Shown here piece after piece: positions 1-11,036 of a DNA stretch of 11,036 bases (position 1 is its first letter; the number at the start of each line of letters is the position of its first letter). The stretch is from Bugula neritina. Taxonomy: Eukaryota; Animalia; Bryozoa. Where the stretch lies: assembly GCA_964035545.1 (NCBI GenBank), contig CAXIUT010000089.1:1-11036 (forward strand), given 5' to 3'. The notes under the pieces were generated by a model. It did no database searches and was not told the DNA's origin. It was given only the letters and a program-made list of their open reading frames with translations. The translations under genes and the position numbers were made by a program.

Positions 1-161
1 CCCAACCCAACCCACCCCAACCCCAACCCAACCCCAACCCCAACCCCAACCCAACCCCAACCCCAACCCCAACCCAACCCCAACCCCAACCCCAACCCCA
101 ACCCCAACCCCAACCCCAACCCCAACCCCAACCCCAACCCCAACCCCAACCCCAACCCCAA
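1..161 (+). repeat. Telomere, C-strand (CCCCAA)n, left end of a macronuclear chromosome
   Basis: Tandem CCCCAA from base 1. There are 14 perfect units at 78-161, with several CCCAA/CCCA short variants distally (1-77). C4A2 is the established Tetrahymena-type ciliate telomere repeat. Confidence 0.97.
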
Positions 162-286
162 CAATATTATATCCTTTGAGATATGATAGCAAAATAAATT
201 TGATAAGAATATTATTGAATAGAAATTTATTAAAATTAATCTCAATTTTGTTTCACTATTAATAAACTTGTATTATTATAGATTGT

Positions 287-991
287 ATGGACTTGCTCGA
301 ATAAATTCTTAGAAAACATCAAACTATCCCTACTAATATCTCCAAAGATATTCGAATAAAAAAATACAAAGCCTTCAAAAATAATCATCTATCAACACCT
401 AAACAATCTCAAACTCGATCTTAATCTTGTCCTCTAAAAAATCACAAAAAATAAGAACAACTATAAAACCTTATATCATCAATTAACAATGAATAAAGAG
501 AAAATATATCAATGAAAAAAAACAAATAAACAAAAATATTTAGTAAAAATAGTTTTATCTTTACAAATTTTGGTCGAAAAAGTGCTTTTCCCATTGAGTA
601 TAAATCCAAGAACGAAAAATGTAATTTTTCAATTACCATCTACCCTAAAGAAAATCATAACTATGAAAATCGTTCAACAGTTTTAGACAACTCTTCTAAA
701 GAACTAGTAAAAAAAAGTAAAGAATAGATCGAGATGAAAGGACTTCCTTTACAAGTAAATCGATTTGCTATCCTTAACAAAAGATCTCCCAAAAGAAAGC
801 AAATAGCAGAAGCAGCTCTTAGTCGTAAATTTTACACACCTTCTGAAATAATTATCCCTTAAATAATCAAAAATAATACAAAATCTTTATCACCCTTACC
901 TTATAAACAAAAAAATATCCAAAGGACAGAAGAAAAGATAGATATTTGTGGATGGGAAAGACCTTTGAGTCCTCATCCACTTTAATAGTGA
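287..991 (+). CDS. Hypothetical protein, 234 aa, Lys/Asn/Ser-rich (TAA/TAG read as sense)
   Basis: ATG at 287 stays open to TGA 989-991 when TAA/TAG are sense: MDLLEXILRKHQTIP...KIDICGWERPLSPHPLXX*. It is flanked by very AT-rich spacers. No domain recognised. Confidence 0.8.
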
Positions 992-1066
992 TAAATACTC
1001 TTCTTTACTTTCATAATAATTATTTATTCAAAATTTAATTTTTATTTCAATAAAAATCGATAATCA

Positions 1067-3046
1067 TCAGTAAATAGCTTTAAGAAGAACATCTTAATCT
1101 CCATTAATAGGTATTACCTCAATTTTCATTTCATTTGCAAGATGCAAAATTACTACTAGAATGCTTGAAGAAGAAAGATTGATATTTATCTAACTAAGTC
1201 GTATCTAGCGAAGTTAGAATACTTTTTCAGTCAATTTTTCTTTCACATCTCTAATATTTCTGATTGTATTGTTTGCAAATCTGTCTGAAGGTTGAAAATT
1301 CCATGATACTTGTGAAGAAGTTCCTATTTAAATAGGAGCTTAGTTATCAATTTAACAAGTACTCATTTCATTTTTTTGATGACTTTTTTATATTTCCATT
1401 TAAGGATATTATTAATTTTCAGGCCTTTAGATAGCTAGAAAACTATTCTGAATAGGTTTTATTGAAATTGATTTTACTTCTTATGGAAATATTCTTTTAA
1501 ATGGTTCACTAAATATACTATATTATACACATTTATTGGAAGCAAAAATTTATCTTGAACTTTTCTCTGTAATATTTCTTTACTGTCATATTTAGATCTT
1601 AAAACATTTTGCCTATTTTATTTTCTGTGATCTAAAAAATCGATAAAATCTTCATCAACTTATTTCTTTTTGATCTATTTTTTTCCTCTTTTTTCTCGAC
1701 GCTTTATTTTTCTTGACTGAAGTTTCATCCCCTTGAATTAAAGTTCCCAAGGAGTCATTTCTGAGTTATATTATGTTTCAGCACTGAGAAAAAAATGAGG
1801 ACCATATTTTTGAGAGAAGTAACTTTGAGTTTCATCTTCATCAATTGAATTAGTAGGAAGATCTTCTGAATATTGAGTGAATTCATTTTGATTCAAAGAG
1901 AAATTCAATTAGTTTTAATTTTGGGAAGATCCTTCTTCTATTTAAACTGGCTTCAGTTCTTCTACATTTTTGTACTAGTAGTTTATCTAATCAGTAAAAT
2001 CATCTACCAAATTCATACCTTAGAAAATTCCTTCTCTTGCATTTTACTTTTTGAAATGAGACATGTTAGCGAAGGAACTGCTGGTTTGTGCTATGAAGTT
2101 TAATTTCTTGAATTCTTATGAAATAAATCGAGGAATTTATGAAGAAGTATATGCTGTTTTTGTCGATTATTCTTCCTAAAATTCATTTGATTCAAAAGGA
2201 GAATCAATTATACTTTAACCCTTAAGATTATCTCCATTCTCTTAAACTTTCTAATTAAAAAAAGTAATTTGACCATTACTTCCAGTCTATTTGACAGATA
2301 AGTACTTAAAAAACATTCAGAAAAAGACTTTTCAAAGTGTCTGAATCAAAAGCCTGCAATTTTTTATTGAAAAGAGGATCAGCTGTAAAATTCATCAAAT
2401 TTTTTTTGATACTTATTTTTTATGGCTACTAGCAATTAATACTCCCTATTTAATATGAGGCCATTGCCTCATTCTAGCCTATACTACTTACATCCATCTG
2501 CAAAAGTGCTCCTCTTTGCTTTCTACTCCTTTCTTCAGGTTATTCAGAGTCAGTTTTATTTGAAACAACTCTTACTAAGCTATCAAACATTCGGTTGGTG
2601 CCCTGAAATACGTGTTCTACTCTTTTGTCATATATCCCCATTGAAGCAGACAAGAGTTCTGATGCAAATTTCCAAAAACGCATGTTTTGTCCTTCTCCTA
2701 ACTGAGGATCTGCAACTCTAACTGGAACCTCAAAAGCATTTCCTGGATTTATTTTCTACTTTAAAATAACATTTACCCCTTTGCGCGCTAATTCTAAAAT
2801 GCTTTGTATACGCTTTTCTTCATCAGGACTTATTCTTAGTCTGTCACTTTCTTAAGTAATTATGTCTTCATAATTTTAGAGTTCATGCCAGATTTCTTGG
2901 GAGTTGATAGTTCTTTGGGAATTACCTGAGAAGATGGAGGCTTGTGAAGAAGTGATGGTTTGTTATGAGCTAGTGACAAGACCATTAAGAGAGCTGAGTC
3001 GAGGACGAGAGCGAGTGTGGGTAATATTTGTTTTTCGTCTACTCAT
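1067..3046 (-). CDS. NCAPH: Condensin I kleisin subunit (CAP-H / Barren / Brn1 / Cnd2 family), ~639 aa after removing 3 tiny introns
   Basis: Hand translation gives family motifs in the expected order: LARKG-KINPGNAF, FWKFASELLSASMGIYDKRVEHV (cf. NFxxASxTLDAxxKIYxxRVD), ADPLFNKKLQAFDSDTLKSLFLN (cf. VDPLFxKxxAxFDE..LLLN), KFLLP, and C-terminal ILVVILHLANEMKI (cf. FICLLHLANE). ATG at 3046-3044, TGA at 1069-1067, immediately followed by a second TGA. Confidence 0.92.
1509..1528 (-). other. 20-nt spliceosomal intron in CAP-H gene
   Basis: GTATAATATAGTATATTTAG on the minus strand. Removal restores the frame leading to the LHLANE C-terminus. Confidence 0.85.
2287..2305 (-). other. 19-nt spliceosomal intron in CAP-H gene
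   Basis: GTACTTATCTGTCAAATAG on the minus strand. Without splicing the frame hits TGA at 2206-2204; with splicing it reads LFLNVFX-TGSNGQITF and stays open to the next intron. Confidence 0.85.
2756..2776 (-). other. Probable 21-nt in-frame intron in CAP-H gene
   Basis: GTAAATGTTATTTTAAAGTAG. Removal joins LARKG to KINPGNAF, matching the kleisin L-x-x-x-N-K-I-x-x-x-N-A-F spacing. It is frame-neutral, so the ORF does not force it. Confidence 0.65.
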
Positions 3047-3203
3047 TACTATTTGAATTATAAATGTGCAAGTTAACTTTAAAGATTGCCTCCATTTTTA
3101 CTTCAATAATTAACTTTCATCAAAAATTAATCACTAATCAATGGATAATTATCTTTTTAGATCTGAATTATTTGATTCAAGTTATTTAGTTATATAATAT
3201 ATA
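3047..3203. promoter_or_regulatory. 157-bp divergent intergenic region (probable bidirectional promoter)
   Basis: AT-rich spacer between head-to-head ATGs at 3046 (minus) and 3204 (plus). Function inferred from position only. Confidence 0.5.
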
Positions 3204-4897
3204 ATGAACAAAAGCTAAATTTCCAACGATTTTAACTTTCAATTCTAACTCGATATTTCTAATACTCAAAACAAAGATAAAACTGAACATTTTTTCTCAA
3301 AAGAAGGATTCCAGCTTGAAGACTTCATGAACATTGGAGATAGAACAAATAAAAGTGATAAATTCGAATCTAAAATCCATCAAAACACATCTTAAATATC
3401 TAAAAAGTAACCTTAAGATCAACTACCATCAGTTTTCATTGATGAACTATCTTCTCATTCAGTAATAAGAAAAAATACGAGAGATTAACTCATTGTTTCT
3501 TCATCTCACATGTCTCAGAATGCAAGCGGTTCCATCACATCTCCAAAATTTGCATAAGCCACTGCTAAGAGTATTTCATTGCCTCCAAGTAAACAGTAAT
3601 TTACTTTAAGAAGAGTTAATGAACAGAAAAATGATGAAATTATCAGAAAAGAATAACATAAAAAGAGTGCTTTTATCAAAAAGGATCACCATTTTGATCC
3701 TCTTCTAAGTTAATATCACAGTATTTAAAGTCAAATTAAATTTTATGAAGAGCAAACTCAAAAAATAATTTATTAAAACTCCAAAATGGAAGACTAAACT
3801 TAAAATTTAATGATGAGTTTCAACAGCGTAAGTTATTAATCATAATTGGATCATTATGCAAAGGAAATCAAAGATATTAATAGACAAATAGAACAAGAAA
3901 GACAACTATAAAAGCAACTAAATAAAATGGTATCACAATTAGAAGAAGAATATCATGGAACAGTTAATTCAATAAAAACTATGGATTTTCCTCGATCAGC
4001 TATTGTTTTTAAAGATGAAGCTAAGGCTTTAATAGATGATATTAATAGTTTAAAAGTTTAATTCTAAGCTTTAGAAAGAGACGATGGATCATTAAATCTT
4101 AGTTCAACTCTATTCGTTGTTCCATCTCACTCAATAGGATATCCAAGTGTTTCTATTCCACATAAACAATAGGAGTAACCTAGTCATAATATGATCAAAT
4201 AAATTTTTGAATAAAATAAGGTTAGTTAAGATCCTCGTTTTTTAACTAACCTTAAAATGGCTTGTTTACGTTCATAATGGGGATTGTTTTCAAACTCAGA
4301 GCTTCAGGTAAGTGTAAGTTATCGTGAATCTCCAAGGATAGTAGTAAGAGTGGGAAACAAAGTTCCCAAAGACCTAGATAAGGTATCTTTAAGACAAAAT
4401 GGAATATCTAAGTTCTAGGGGTAGGTAATAGGAGCTAAAAGTTACTATACTCATAATATTGATGTGAATCAAGATATTGTAAACGATCTTTTTGTTAAAC
4501 TGGAGTTAAGCTATACGATGTACTTTTCAATTGATTTAGATTGTAGTAGAAAAAAATGATAACTTTGTTTATACCAGCTGGTATGACTACATTTGGCGAG
4601 TTTTCTCCAATAACACAGAAAGAATTCGAAGCTGATTCAAAGGATGATTAGTTTATTTATAGTGGAGGGTATCGTCCAATAGATAAAAAACTTATATCTA
4701 GCATATCTTAAATAGCTGTATATCAACCAAATGTGATGATAAATCATGATAAATAGGTATGTTTTGGTCTTTTTATTCTTCCTCTAGGAGATTGTTAATT
4801 TGTTGTGTTTCGACAGCGCGGAGAAATGCTATCAATAGCAACTAAAGAATAAAATTGGCCTCTTGTTAGAATTCTAGAATTCATTTATACTGTTTGA
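3204..4897 (+). CDS. 557 aa protein: low-complexity N-terminus, coiled coil, C-terminal alpha-adaptin appendage (ear)-like domain
   Basis: Open from ATG 3204 to TGA 4895-4897 after one 20-nt intron. C-terminal LKMACLRSXWGLFSNSELQVSVSY..IVVRVGNK...LELSY...ITLFIPAGMTTFGEFSPITQKEF resembles the AP-2 alpha ear (GVLFEN..LQIG..FYGNK..LKLP..KF.P...DF). The CDS is solid; the domain call is moderate. Confidence 0.8.
4520..4539 (+). other. 20-nt spliceosomal intron
   Basis: GTACTTTTCAATTGATTTAG. The unspliced frame stops at 4557-4559; the spliced frame continues ~119 codons through the ear-like platform region. Confidence 0.85.
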
Positions 4898-4920
4898 TTT
4901 AATCATTTTTGTTATTTATT

Positions 4921-5555
4921 CATTTTCTTACATAAAACTCAAAATTGAAGTCATCAGATATTGCCATCAATATTTACCTTTTCTAAAATATCTCAAAACA
5001 AGACCTATCTGTATATATTATCAAAATTTATGATATATTTATTGAACTTTCAACATTTTATCAATGGCTATTGTAAGATGAGACTAAGAGGAGATGAACA
5101 ATTATTGAAAAATCAAAAATATATATTTTTTAAAACTTTAAAGAGTGCATTCTGGCTTATCAAAATCTGTACTGTAAAATTGTAGATTGTCACAGATTTT
5201 TATTTCTAATAGAAAACTAAAAATTGAAACTGTATTTATTTTTATCTTGTAAGTAAAAGAAAAATGTATAGGATAATTCTTGATTATAATTTGTCTTTTA
5301 TTCAGTCTAATTACCAATTCTAGACTTTATATAATAATGTTAATATTGATTTAGTATTGTTTTAATAGCTTATAGAATATTTAATATGATATTCTTTCCA
5401 GAACTGTTATTACTGACAATCCGCTAAACTAAATATCAAACAATAACAAAGTAATCGATGAAAGAATACATTCTCCTTCTCTAAATTCAAGAACGATATC
5501 CCTATTTCATAAAAAATAGTTTTTTCAAACTGATATTAAACAAAGCTTATCCTGA
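4921..5555 (+). pseudogene. Possible decayed gene or short uncertain CDS
   Basis: Frame 1 reads protein-like (FXNISKQDLSVYIIKIYDIFIELSTFYQWLLXDETKRR*TIIEKSK...) but has no ATG and an internal TGA at 5095-5097. It can be joined through candidate introns 5253-5271 (19 nt) and 5354-5375 (22 nt) to TGA 5553-5555. Alternative: an 89 aa ORF from ATG 5264. Confidence 0.3.
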
Positions 5556-5698
5556 AGAATTTTTCATTATTTTAGTGCCCAAATACATCTTTAAAGAAAG
5601 TTCTGTACTTCCTAAGGTTTAAGTTTTAAAAAATCAATAAGTCATTGAAAAATAAAAAAAACATATGAGCAAAAAAATCATTTAAGAGTGAACTGGCT

Positions 5699-6103
5699 TC
5701 AGTTGGGGACTTGCTTGAAATCCTCACCGTCAGTTGAGTTTGAAAATTTAGTTTGGGCCTAAATATCTTTATTAGCCTGAGTCAATGTGGTGGAAGAAAG
5801 ATTGAGGATGAGATTTTTGTTTTTGAATTCAAAGCTGAAGTTTTTGTTATTTGAGTTCTTTTTGATGAAGAGAGTGCCCACTTTTTTGCGACTGTCATAG
5901 CACCAGACTTCTAGCTTGTCTATTTCTTCATGAGCTTCAACCAAAAAGGGAGAATCAGAGGAAAGAACATCTTTTGTAGATGAGACTGATTAGATCTATT
6001 CATCATGGTAGGCGATGACATAGAAGTTGGTCTGTGAGAATCCAGTCTTGATTTTCTTTAAATCTTTGATTTGTAGGAGAACCTTGTATTGGACTGTTGA
6101 CAT
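5699..6103 (-). CDS. Small 134 aa protein, possibly a divergent stand-alone C2-like beta-sandwich
   Basis: MSTVQYKVLLQIKDLKKIKTGFSQTNFYVIAYHDEXIXSVSS...KLEVWCYDSRKKVGTLFIK...DGEDFKQVPN*. Intronless, relatively rich in C-ending codons (TTC, ATC, AAC, CTC). It extends ORF-track entry 5759..5944 through TAA/TAG. LEVWCYD..KVGTLFI resembles C2 LEVWDxD...IGxxxI. Confidence 0.85.
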
Positions 6104-6627
6104 TTGCTTTTTAATTAATATAACATGTGAGATGAAATCTGGAATTTACAAGTGATACCTTCAGTAACAGTAAATCATTAATTTTACATAGTTTCATGAT
6201 TTTATTCCCTTATTGACCCATTATTACTCTAATTGAGCTTCATAATATTCTCTAATAATTGATTATTAAGGATTAATGATAAATACAAAAAGGAAATTTT
6301 TGATACCTTCTTCATCTAATATTATAAAATAATGCAATATCATTCTTATAACTTTGTTTTTAACCTTTTGTTTGACTATTGTAGGATAAATAACTAGTTT
6401 CTAACAGTTTTAATCTTTAATTCAAAAAAAAAAGGATTAAATATATCAATTAACATAAAGTAACTCATTTCTCATCCTGACAATTCTTTTAAAGAGATAA
6501 TTTCAAACAAAATAGTCCATATTCTATTAGTTTTAATCATTTAAATACTTTAAAACAATGATTTTTATTCTAGAATTTTAATAAAATCTAACAACAGCCT
6601 ATATAATTCATAACATAATATATTTAT

Positions 6628-7659
6628 ATGCTAAATACTCGATAAAAATACTCTCTCCAACCCCAAACAGCCAGCCGTTCTTAACTCATCAATAATATCT
6701 TCAAAGTCATCAGAAAAAAAAAAGCAGACCTTGTTCGATAGATCAGACATACAGAAAACAATGAATTATCCTTCCCCAATCTTAATGACAAATTTTACCA
6801 CCCTAAAGAGAAATATCATAAAGGAAGTAATAGTGAGAACGATGAATAATAAAAAGGATAAACATTTGCCCATACACCTGTCAACAAGTATCGTAATGCT
6901 TTCAGAAACCAATCTGTAAAATATGATAGCACTTCTTTAAAAACAAATGATCGAACAGGAAAATAACTATTTAAAATAGAAGTAGACAGAGATGAATATC
7001 AAATGAAAAGTAATCGCATTATGTCATAAGCGACTCAATTACCTCAAAAAATAATTTTTAAGACAGCATAAATTTAATCAAGTGATCTTCCCAAGAAAAT
7101 ATAAATTAATAATTTAAATAACTTACAAAATGCAAAAAAAATGTTCAAATAAAGTATCGTCAAAATACCAAAATCAATCAAAAATAGAAATTAAGCAAGT
7201 TTATTGTAAAATATTCGATTATTAGAATTTTTTAACCCTTTTTTCAATAGAAATAGTAGAATTATCAATGTTTGTCTGCTAAAAATAGGGCATATCATAG
7301 TTAAAAATGACTAACTACTGTATAAGTTGGGAGAATAAAGATCTTATTTTTATATTATCCTTTTGGGTAAGGTAAAGATGACAAATGGAGGTTTAAAAAA
7401 GATTTGTCAGACTGGATAGACTCTTTTATAGGAGATATTTTTCAATGGAAGAGATAAAAACATATCTTTAGAAAGAGCTAAATGTATAGGATAAACATAT
7501 TTGCTCCAAATTGGAATAGGATAATATAAACGTATGAAAGAACAAATGATAAAGCATCGGTTTAGAATAGAAATGCAGGAGATGTAGGTTTTAGTTAAAA
7601 GAAATTTCATAGTAAAGAATTGGCTTAGAAATAAAATAAAGAAATAATACTAAAATTGA
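6628..7659 (+). CDS. Cyclic-nucleotide-binding (cNMP/CAP_ED) domain protein, 343 aa
   Basis: Open ATG 6628 to TGA 7657-7659 with no intron needed. C-terminal LLYKLGEXRSYFYIILLGKVKM...ICQTGXTLLXEIFF...ERAKCIGXTYLLQI matches the cNMP-domain pattern (G..fYiI..G.V...G..FGE...A....ll.i). Confidence 0.88.
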
Positions 7660-7695
7660 TATTGAGTTTTTTATATTACTATTATTCTATAATAT

Positions 7696-7782
7696 GGGGT
7701 TGGGGTTGGGGTTGGGGTTGGGGTTGGGGTTGGGGTTGGGGTTGGGGTTGGGGTTGGGGTTGGGGTTGGGGTTGGGGTTGGG
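7696..7782 (+). repeat. Telomeric repeat, G-strand (GGGGTT)14 + GGG, internal to the window
   Basis: Perfect tandem GGGGTT, oriented as the right-hand telomere for 1-7695, starting 36 bp after the stop codon at 7659. Confidence 0.97.
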
Positions 7783-8299
7783 ACTGTCATTTTTTTATGT
7801 TCAACAACATTCTCTTTTACATGGTTTATATAGATTATTATTTGTTATTATAACTAATCAGATTTGACAAGCAGAGTTAGAGATAAAAAGAATAGTATTT
7901 GATGATAAAAAAATTACAGATTAGTGCCATCATGTAATAATTTCTCTGATATTGATCAACAATTAACCAAGATCAATTGTCAAAGATAAATAAATGCATT
8001 AGTATTAAGAAATTATAACCTTTTAAATCAATATTTTATTCATAACTGTAGAAATGTCAATATTTTAAATTTAGCATCATTTAAACAATAAATAGATTAA
8101 ATATTTCAAATGCCATATAAAAAAGGAACTACAGGAAAAAAAATCATTGCAAAGTAAACTATCAATTAAACATCAATACACAGAAAGGATGATCCGATTA
8201 GTTATAAAAATTAACTGCAAAATACCAGAGCATCTCAACTATCAAAACACGGATATCTTCAATTTTGGAGATTAGCTACAGAAAATATAACTGATCAAA

Positions 8300-8952
8300 G
8301 TAGGAAGAAGTATTTAAATATAAAGGTTAATTTATAAGTAACTTCAAATATTGTTTGTTAATCTATAAAAATTTGTTTTAAAGGTCTTTAATTGAATTCA
8401 ATTTTTTGTTTTGTTTTTTTGATAAGAAACTTGAGAAAGCAGCTTTTTATGGTATTTAGAAGACCCTAGAACTGTTCAATATCATCTATCTTATTAATAT
8501 TGGATCATTTTAGTTTCAATTTCTAGCTTCAACGAGATAACGAAACAGAACTTAAATGCATGCATCTATGGGCATCATCACAGTTCTTTTTCTTTTTTAC
8601 AATACTTATTACTTTTTTCGATTTCAGTTTCCTAAATGACTGGATAAAAACATGATATCTTTGTTGTAAAATCAGATTTTTAACTCCCAAACTTTATAGT
8701 ATGAGCATAAATACAATCCTTTTTGATTTTATTAGCAAATGAATCACTTGTTTTGGCAGTTTCTTTTTGCAACCCAGCAAAGAGATATTTGATGTTTATT
8801 ATACAACTAATTCAGAATTATATATTCTTCCTTCTCTATTACTTATTTATTGGTGGCAATGATGTTTATTCCTTTGATTTTTACCTTGATTCTGTCTTTT
8901 TTAATAATTATTATAAATCATCTAAAACTTCTTCTTTTATATTAGTTTATCC
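8300..8952 (-). pseudogene. Possible decayed coding sequence
   Basis: The minus frame reads TNIKEEVLDDLXXLLKKTESRXKSKEXTSLPPINK...F*ISCII...ETEIEKSNKYCKKEKEL** with TGA at 8955-8953, 8814-8812 and 8580-8575 and no ATG. A further protein-like stretch (NKIDDIEQFXGLLNTIKSCF) lies in another frame. The lower boundary is approximate. Confidence 0.3.
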
Positions 8953-9168
8953 TCAACAGTAATAAAAGCTACATTTTTTTAAAAAATAAACCGTCAAATT
9001 TACCTTATTTTCAGAGGATTAATTTTTTAAAATGAACTAATATAATATTTAAATGATTGGAATATTCTACAAAAGAACATTTTTATAAAGAGGTCAAAAT
9101 TAAAGTTAAAAATCTATTTAAGAACATGAAAACTTCATTAATATTATTTAACTTCCTGATTCAATTGA

Positions 9169-10362
9169 ATGAATAAAATAAATATTTCAAAAATATAAAT
9201 TCCTTTCCAATAAGAGTAAGTTATATACTAAGTATTTCCTAGTCTAGATAAAACAGTTAATATATATTTTAAAGGCAAAAACAATCAAATATTTTTTGCT
9301 CGAATGTAGTAAAAAGGCGTTCGAATAGTATATAAATTAAATTAAACTTAATGCTATAATATTTCAGATGGCCTTATTCTGTGGGTTTCTTAATTTTAAA
9401 TTAAAGTTTTAAACACAAAAAAATAATTTTAAAAAGTAATTAAACCTTCCTTTTGGTTTTGAAAGAACAGTTTTTAAAGCTTGTACCTTCTCTAATTCAA
9501 AAACTACTTGGTCTTCATCTGTATAATGAGATAAATCAGACTATTAGACTGGCTTATTATTCTTTATAAAACAATAGAAACAGATAGTAACTGTGTTGCC
9601 TATTATGAATCGAAAGAAAGAGATTTTAAAACTAACTTTAAATAACTAAAAAGCTTTATATAAAGTCAATGAACACTCTAAATTTGGATGGTTTCAAAGC
9701 AATTAAATAACATATAAGTCAGCATGGAATAAACTAATTTTATCTTTCTACTAACTTGACAACTAATTCAAAGGAAAAGAAAGTTGTATTATCACGATCA
9801 ACTCTATTCTTGATGTACATGAAATTAAGCCATTCAAATCAATACAGGTTAGATAAATTTATGAGTTTGCTGTTAATAGATACTATGTTGAGCTATTTTT
9901 TGATTTACGGTAAGAAGGAGAATCAACTTTAACCCTTGAAATAGACGCTAAATAATCTAGTGGAACTCTTTCAACTATTAGTCAGAAATAAAAATTTGAG
10001 TTGATACCTAAATATAGATCAATTAAGTATTTAAATCAACTCACAGGCAACTTAGAAAAATCTAGATAGAATAAATAGAATCAAATCAGATAAGTTCAAT
10101 TTTGAATATACTTAAGAATAAAAACATTTATAAGAGACCTTAAGATGTTAAGTACATAGTTTCACCTTGGAATTAAAAAATAGTAACAAAAATGTAAATT
10201 ATTGATTTCAAAGCAATAACCAAGAGTAAAAAAGCAATTATTGAGGTATTTTAGCTAATTGATATGAAAGATATATACATACAAATGCTTCTTTCTCTGA
10301 ATTAAAATTTCGATGATGATCTACTTCAAGATGCCCTTGACTTGCTTATTCAAGAGGAATGA
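9169..10362 (+). CDS. Hypothetical beta-strand-rich protein (~380 aa) with two tiny introns and one unexplained in-frame TGA
   Basis: ATG 9169 (MNKINISKIXIPFQ...SLDKTVNIYFKG...DGLILWVS); introns 9521-9539 and 10027-10046 link the frames to ...NFDDDLLQDALDLLIQEE* (TGA 10360-10362). TGA at 9460-9462 needs a third intron, an error or pseudogenisation. The 3' part (from ~9540) is better supported than the start. Confidence 0.6.
9521..9539 (+). other. 19-nt intron candidate
   Basis: GTATAATGAGATAAATCAG contains the TGA that closes the downstream frame. Removal gives FKNYLVFIY-YXTGLLFFIK. Confidence 0.6.
10027..10046 (+). other. 20-nt intron
   Basis: GTATTTAAATCAACTCACAG. Removal shifts into the frame running ~105 codons to TGA 10362. 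Confidence 0.75.
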
Positions 10363-10901
10363 TCAAATATATAATATATTTTACTTATTTTATAATACTA
10401 TACCTAAATAATATCTTAAGTAGCTGTAATTTTCTTACATTGTTTACTTAACTCAATAAATTTGAAATTATTTCGATTGTTAACTATAATTAATTCAAAA
10501 ACAATCACCGGCTTGATGGAATCATAAATAGTTAATCAGATAAAAATATTTATTTACTATCAAAATAAAAATATGTATTTCATAAGAATATATTTACTAC
10601 AATTGATAAAATTATATTTTCTTATTATTAGTTGAAATTATTGATATTTTATCTCCTATCTTATCCTTATCAATAATTAATAATTATGACATCTTGTTTC
10701 AGCTACTTCACTAAAGTGTTAGGACTCTTGATCTCTTCCTACTCGTAAATTTATTCACTTTGATTGAGATAGCGGAGATACTACTTCTTCTGGAGGAGAT
10801 TTATAGCTATATTGATGTGAATAATTATAAAGATTTAATGATATTTTTGATATGTAACAATAATAAGTTGATAATAATAGTTTTCGAATCTAACATAACC
10901 A

Positions 10902-11036
10902 ATGATATCAACTCTAACAACCCTCACCATGTCCTTCACTCGAGTCCCCATGATCAAATTCCTAGGTCCTCGCCATCTCCTCAAACATGTTCCAACTCCC
11001 CAACCATCCAACTCCAATCAAGTCAAAATGAATCTC
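10902..11036 (+). CDS. KGD4: 5' part of a Kgd4/Ymr31/MRPS36-like mitochondrial protein (2-oxoglutarate dehydrogenase adaptor), truncated by the window end
   Basis: MISTLTTLTMSFTRVPMIKFLGPRHLLKHVPTPQPSNSNQVKMNL. An acid-free Ser/Thr-rich presequence-like start is followed by PMIKFLGPRH, matching the family N-terminal P(L/M)IKFxGxR motif, then a Pro/Ser linker. Confidence 0.7.
   Translation, partial: MISTLTTLTMSFTRVPMIKFLGPRHLLKHVPTPQPSNSNQVKMNL

Follow-up and report, generated by a model that had tools for sequence, protein, structure and literature searches.

The ciliate chromosome that fills most of the DNA analyzed here very probably belongs to an organism that translates both UAA and UAG as glutamate and terminates at UGA, the sole stop codon seen, i.e., that uses the peritrich nuclear code (NCBI table 30). 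This reading is drawn from comparisons of codons with the residues and codons found opposite them in homologs: a profile analysis of HSP70-family genes and the codon exchange observed among orthologs, with TAA and TAG considered separately in each, both support glutamate rather than glutamine as the meaning of TAA and TAG (TAR), as a preliminary description of this DNA had proposed.

A ciliate chromosome in an animal genome assembly

The window, by which we refer to the whole 11,036-nucleotide stretch that was analyzed, is the whole of one contig (C98; CAXIUT010000089.1) in the 216-Mb assembly of the bryozoan Bugula neritina (GCA_964035545.1). The largest contigs of this assembly (C1 to C9) are animal chromosomes: their HSP70 genes lack in-frame stops, and their tRNA and rDNA arrays are those normal for an animal. 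None of the sequence examined resembled human DNA. Of the small contigs that were sampled, most have a GC content of 22–34% and C4A2 repeats at their start; these AT-rich, C4A2-capped contigs, which range in size from 4 to 100 kb, represent chromosomes from the macronucleus of a ciliate that came into the animal assembly as a passenger.

Direct reading of the window revealed a C4A2 telomere at its left end (positions 1–162), the same repeat that caps most of the sampled small contigs, and a G4T2 telomere that marks the right end of the chromosome, yet is internal to the contig (7696–7782). Since both ends are capped, positions 1–7782 are a complete macronuclear ciliate chromosome of about 7.8 kb. 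Telomeres of the G4T2 type are found in Tetrahymena, and are consistent with an affiliation to the Oligohymenophorea. Five reading frames are carried between the two telomeres, and the subtelomeres are very short: the TGA of the last gene lies 37 bases from the right telomere (7657–7696), and the first ATG about 125 bases from the left one (162–287).

Past the right telomere, the contig continues with 3.25 kb of further AT-rich, ciliate-like DNA (7783–11,036), for which direct reading revealed neither a C4A2 telomere where it meets the chromosome nor a telomere at the contig end. The join at 7782 is probably an assembly or read chimera between the complete 7.8-kb chromosome and a fragment of another.

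Predicted genes of the window

The first frame (287–991, plus strand) is delimited by TGA and represents a predicted gene with no assigned function, having a weak ortholog match to a related contig (L042, E 1e-10). It closes with the triplets TAA-TAG-TGA (983–991), which, given a code in which TAR is glutamate, would specify two terminal glutamates before the real stop.

The region from 1070 to 3058 on the minus strand, which the preliminary description had identified as CAP-H, is split over several frame segments and contains numerous TAA and TAG codons in frame. Three colinear stop-free pieces of it match PF05786 (Cnd2) alone, at profile positions 112–158, 209–243 and 730–752. The pieces score 11.4, 16.9 and 13.4 bits, each singly under the cut-off of 29.8 bits, while their sum is 41.7 bits, and orthologs occur on related contigs (L037–L043), where codons facing the TAR codons are GAR or TAR. 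The identification as a condensin kleisin (CAP-H/Cnd2) is thus supported by profile matches. As a second, better-scoring Cnd2 (CAP-H) gene is present on another ciliate contig (C126:6201–7472), the window kleisin would be one of at least two paralogs.

Two further genes are conserved, neither with an assigned function. The gene at 3204–4897 (plus strand), which contains a frame change near 4535–4556, has an ortholog that is 56–60% identical on related contigs (L040–L044), and the small gene at 5702–6145 (minus strand) has an ortholog on three of them (L040–L042, E 1e-24 to 1e-25). The last reading frame of the chromosome (6562–7659, plus strand) holds the three codons on which the preliminary description was based. 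It runs for 365 codons without TGA (6562–7656), including 22 TAA and 5 TAG, and ends at the TGA at 7657–7659.

A stop-free stretch of 94 codons at 6635–6916 is not in the frame used by the downstream part of this last gene. Such frame changes inside single genes, seen here (6635–6916 versus 6562–7656), at 4535–4556 and at several points in 1070–3058, may reflect very small introns or indels introduced by the assembly. An Rfam search of the window found nothing.

Codon meaning in HSP70-family genes

A scan for the HSP70 family identified four ciliate genes, each on a chromosome of its own, which contain between 2 and 35 TAR codons in frame and lack TGA. As the reference for this single protein family, we built a hidden Markov model (HMM) from 33 BiP sequences of at most 71% identity, collected with a word search that used a stop-free piece as the query; closer relatives were excluded because the gene caller had rendered TAG as Q in them and ended them at TAA. 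The ciliate genes were then aligned to the HMM with an X at every TAR, and log emission probabilities were summed over the aligned positions of each codon.

Glutamate was the best residue for TAA (n = 73), with lysine, aspartate and glutamine behind it by 34.6, 34.7 and 62.7 nats, respectively, as well as for TAG (n = 24), with the same three residues behind by 13.7, 15.2 and 23.6 nats; the posterior for glutamate in this profile sum exceeds 0.99999 for TAA and TAG alike. The control codons GAA, GAG, CAA, AAA, AAG, GAT and AAT were decoded correctly by the same sum, and CAG (n = 15) was ambiguous. Gene by gene, TAA was assigned to glutamate in all four HSP70-family genes and TAG in two of them; one gene has no aligned TAG (L006), and a divergent HSP110-like gene was uninformative for this codon (L012).

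The most conserved columns of the reference alignment give the same picture. Columns with at least 90% glutamate hold the ciliate codons GAA (44), TAA (16), GAG (10) and TAG (8), and columns with at least 90% lysine hold AAA (50), AAG (23), TAA (4) and TAG (2). In columns with at least 90% glutamine, we found CAA (21), CAG (3), a single TAG and no TAA. Invariant HSP70 glutamates written as TAR include those of the motifs GG-E-DFD (TAA), V-I-E-N-A-E-G and F-E-V-K. Furthermore, the summed composition is in keeping with this assignment, as GAR and TAR together account for 9.9% of codons versus 9.1% glutamate in the references, and CAR for 3.5% versus 4.0% glutamine.

Codon usage differs between the two BiP paralogs (L006 and L008, on contigs C95 and C291): one has 0.6% TAR and 9.5% GAR, the other 6.0% TAR and 5.0% GAR. 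TAR may be avoided in a highly expressed BiP copy.

Codon exchange between orthologs

Scanning metagenomes with a 71-residue piece of the kleisin, we identified eight related contigs from several other ciliates, which are syntenic with the window genes at 1070–3058, 3204–4897 and 5702–6145, and counted codons against codons in four non-redundant relatives. Window TAA codons (n = 112) face GAR in 38 cases, TAR in 29, GAY in 6, CAR in 3 and AAR in 1, and window TAG codons (n = 46) face GAR in 12, TAR in 6, GAY in 4, CAR in 3 and AAR in 2. The corresponding counts for GAR, TAR, GAY, CAR and AAR are 54, 26, 23, 8 and 5 opposite GAA (n = 159); 6, 5, 1, 43 and 8 opposite CAA (n = 81); and 5, 3, 2, 5 and 109 opposite AAA (n = 182).

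The TAA and TAG distributions are indistinguishable from that of GAA (p 0.4–0.6). By Fisher tests, they differ from those of CAA (p = 2e-15 for TAA, 2e-6 for TAG) and AAA (p = 3e-29 and 2e-11), p-values that are overstated because the pairs come from four relatives with shared ancestry. Even so, the direction of exchange, between TAR and GAR, is unmistakable, and the code of the passenger ciliate is evidently also that of the relatives.

Individual genes can be followed site by site. In the gene at 3204–4897, 27 of the 30 TAA sites that could be aligned face GAA, GAG, TAA or TAG. The preliminary description had also pointed to TAR codons in acidic linkers of CAP-H. Of these, position 2540 faces TAA, TAA, GAC and TAG in the four orthologs; 2429 faces GAA, TAA, GAA and GAA; and 2426 faces GAA, TAA, ACT and TAA. 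The codons at 2420, 2176 and 2167 fall in regions of low conservation and have mixed codons opposite.

When BiP was compared with a relative that is 94% identical, six of the six TAR sites of either species faced GAR or TAR, with TAG facing both GAA and GAG. Three TAR codons are among the last 10 codons of the gene, and the C-terminus is conserved beyond them up to identical final residues, after which comes TGA in both; TAR is thus read through within ten codons of the end of the gene, with TGA as the terminator.

Stop codon and candidate decoder tRNAs

TGA ends every gene examined (about ten), close to where homology ends. The HSP70 frames, with lengths of 600–800 codons, contain no internal TGA and likewise end at a TGA where homology ends.

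Pattern searches for a CUA anticodon loop with a T arm at the right distance gave six matches, versus one for the reversed pattern, on the small contigs C10, C256 and C188. The tRNA-like candidate at C10:16813–16847 combines a 7-base loop carrying the CUA anticodon with an anticodon stem of 5 bp that pairs perfectly, followed by a variable loop of 4 bases and a T arm. The sequence of the 5' stem strand was predicted from the 3' strand, and exactly this sequence was then found (TCGGA / CT-CTA-AA / TCCGA). In the 3' half of the candidate, the 4-base variable loop and the TTCGATT T loop are as in host and ciliate glutamate tRNAs, and the anticodon stem also resembles that of glutamine tRNAs. A second candidate arm with a CUA anticodon is located at C256:3992–4021.

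The three UUA candidates, on C73 and C214, are equally readable as tRNA-Lys(UUU), and the stem test on the C73 candidate gave no match under either reading; pattern searches of the assembly found no tRNA with an unambiguous UUA anticodon. ARAGORN detected no tRNA in approximately 330 kb of ciliate and related DNA, and the whole-genome tRNA scan scored 63 of 18,702 candidates, mostly from the host.

The comparisons above show the meaning of UAA and of UAG, each scored by itself, and termination at UGA in the genes examined. For the decoding machinery, taking known codes of this kind as a guide, we propose that UAR would be decoded by glutamate-charged tRNAs with CUA and UUA anticodons, and that the release factor would recognize UGA alone.

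The three codons of the last reading frame

The preliminary description had placed two TAG codons (7417–7419 and 7429–7431) and one TAA codon (7492–7494) at conserved glutamate positions of a cyclic-nucleotide-binding (cNMP) domain. Direct reading of the plus strand confirms that all three are present and in frame within the TGA-free stretch 6562–7656. TAR accounts for 7.4% of the codons in this frame, about the level expected by chance for AT-rich sequence, and the three codons alone therefore carry little weight; they are read as glutamate here from the genome-wide evidence, not from their own sites.

The cNMP domain itself was not confirmed in any of the comparisons made. A six-frame scan of the whole assembly with PF00027 at E ≤ 10, in which all 74 candidates were scored, placed none on the window's contig, so that 7213–7560, the stretch in question, has no significant match to the cNMP-binding profile. 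Stop-free pieces of the last frame (20–33 residues) had no relevant match in the PDB, and the local alignment of the read-through translation with Escherichia coli CRP scored at shuffle level (z = −0.26), with one local match, a G-E-x-x-x-x-x-Y-x-I-x-x-G-x-V stretch. A word search found no relatives of the gene at 6562–7659, and no ortholog was found on the related contigs. Furthermore, the ciliate loci examined as possible reference-set seeds contain no canonical F-G-E cNMP motif. The register chosen in the preliminary description is the natural ungapped one with respect to CRP and PKA, which amounts to a resemblance seen by eye. We consider this by-eye argument weak; the conclusion that was drawn from it is correct but rests on other data.

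A PF00027 match of 39 bits is present on another ciliate contig (C315:15896–16090). Searching for the codon pattern F-G-TAR-hydrophobic-A/S-L, we found F-G-TAA-L-A-L inside this match (C315:15942–15958, minus strand), at the place of the phosphate-binding cassette. Judging by this profile match, the invariant glutamate of the cassette is written TAA in the passenger ciliate at this locus, but not demonstrably in the window.

Alternative readings of TAA and TAG

Under table 6, the code usual in ciliates, glutamine is the meaning of both TAA and TAG. This is the commonest reassignment in ciliates (PMC11687900), public gene callers put Q at TAG in a close relative (P0001), and some low-complexity stretches read equally well with glutamine. 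Nevertheless, we regard this code as very improbable here: in the HSP70 profiles, glutamine falls behind glutamate by 62.7 nats for TAA and 23.6 nats for TAG, TAR in conserved glutamine columns amounts to 1 of 39 codons, the ratio of GAR to CAR among the exchanges is 38:3 for TAA and 12:3 for TAG, and CAR by itself already covers the expected glutamine content. Just as improbable is a split code of the kind used by Oligohymenophorea sp. PL0344, with TAA as lysine and TAG as glutamate. Such a code does exist in an oligohymenophorean ciliate (PMC10553269), lysine is the second-best residue for TAA, and three tRNA-like matches on ciliate contigs are readable as UUA or Lys-UUU. Yet TAA favors glutamate over lysine by 34.6 nats (and over glutamine by the 62.7 nats given above), occurs 16 times in conserved glutamate columns and 4 times in conserved lysine columns, where there are 73 AAR codons, and exchanges with GAR in 38 cases but with AAR in 1, and invariant HSP70 glutamates are written TAA, e.g., that of the GG-E-DFD motif. 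The split meaning of TAA and TAG that the preliminary description had allowed for is thus contradicted by the data on TAA.

Somewhat more room, though still very little, is left for a context-dependent code as in Condylostoma or the karyorelicts, in which TAR would be glutamate inside genes while also terminating at some gene ends, about ten of which were looked at. All genes examined end at TGA near the end of homology, one gene of the window ends with TAA-TAG-TGA, and the C-terminus of BiP is conserved beyond three TAR codons in its last 10 codons. That no reassignment took place, and that the in-frame TAA and TAG codons are genuine terminators belonging to pseudogenes, introns or misassembled sequence, is scarcely credible. 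The assembly does have frame shifts within genes (1070–3058, 3204–4897 and 6562–7659) and the chimeric join at 7782, but full-length HSP70 alignments cross 14 to 35 TAR codons without a TGA, TAR positions are kept as TAR or GAR in other species, and TAR codons are concentrated on glutamate columns.

A separate question is which ciliate carries the glutamate code. The SSU rRNA scan of the assembly scored host copies only, and the closest named BiP relatives are Paramecium (68% identity) and Cyclidium (67%), in a comparison that contained no named peritrich sequence. It is conceivable, if unlikely, that the passenger is not a peritrich and that a second lineage of the Oligohymenophorea has acquired, or has retained, UAR as glutamate, here in combination with a macronuclear genome that is highly fragmented into C4A2-capped, 4–100-kb chromosomes.

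Significance and comparison with known codes

The value of recognizing table 30 in this assembly is mainly practical, and leaves the knowledge of genetic codes unchanged. About 300 contigs of the animal assembly are ciliate, and gene calling with the standard, bacterial or table-6 code breaks or mistranslates their genes; recognition of the code would lead to correct annotation and cleaner removal of contaminants, and would yield telomere-capped chromosomes, in a nearly complete set, for a group of ciliates that has been little sequenced. Public protein collections hold close BiP relatives that have Q at TAG and are cut at the first TAA (P0001 / L033:9741–11660). These entries are gene-caller mistranslations, and any inference of the code that took them as references would be biased.

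The use of UAR for glutamate is already known as the peritrich code (PMC11687900), with Campanella and Carchesium among the ciliates named for it (PMC10553269), so that nothing new on genetic codes is added here. The code of the passenger ciliate matches table 30 (Vorticella, Opisthonecta, Campanella, Carchesium) in assigning UAA as well as UAG to glutamate and termination to UGA. With Oligohymenophorea sp. PL0344, in which UAA is lysine and UAG glutamate (PMC10553269), it shares UAG as glutamate and UGA as the stop; PL0344 has suppressor tRNA(CUA) genes, while the passenger ciliate has candidate CUA arms. The two differ in UAA, which is glutamate here rather than lysine (34.6 nats; 38 exchanges with GAR versus 1 with AAR). 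As in the table 6 code (Tetrahymena, Paramecium, Oxytricha), both UAR codons are reassigned together, with UGA as the sole stop, and the telomere is of the G4T2 type, as in Tetrahymena; the difference lies in the amino acid, which is glutamate here and not glutamine.
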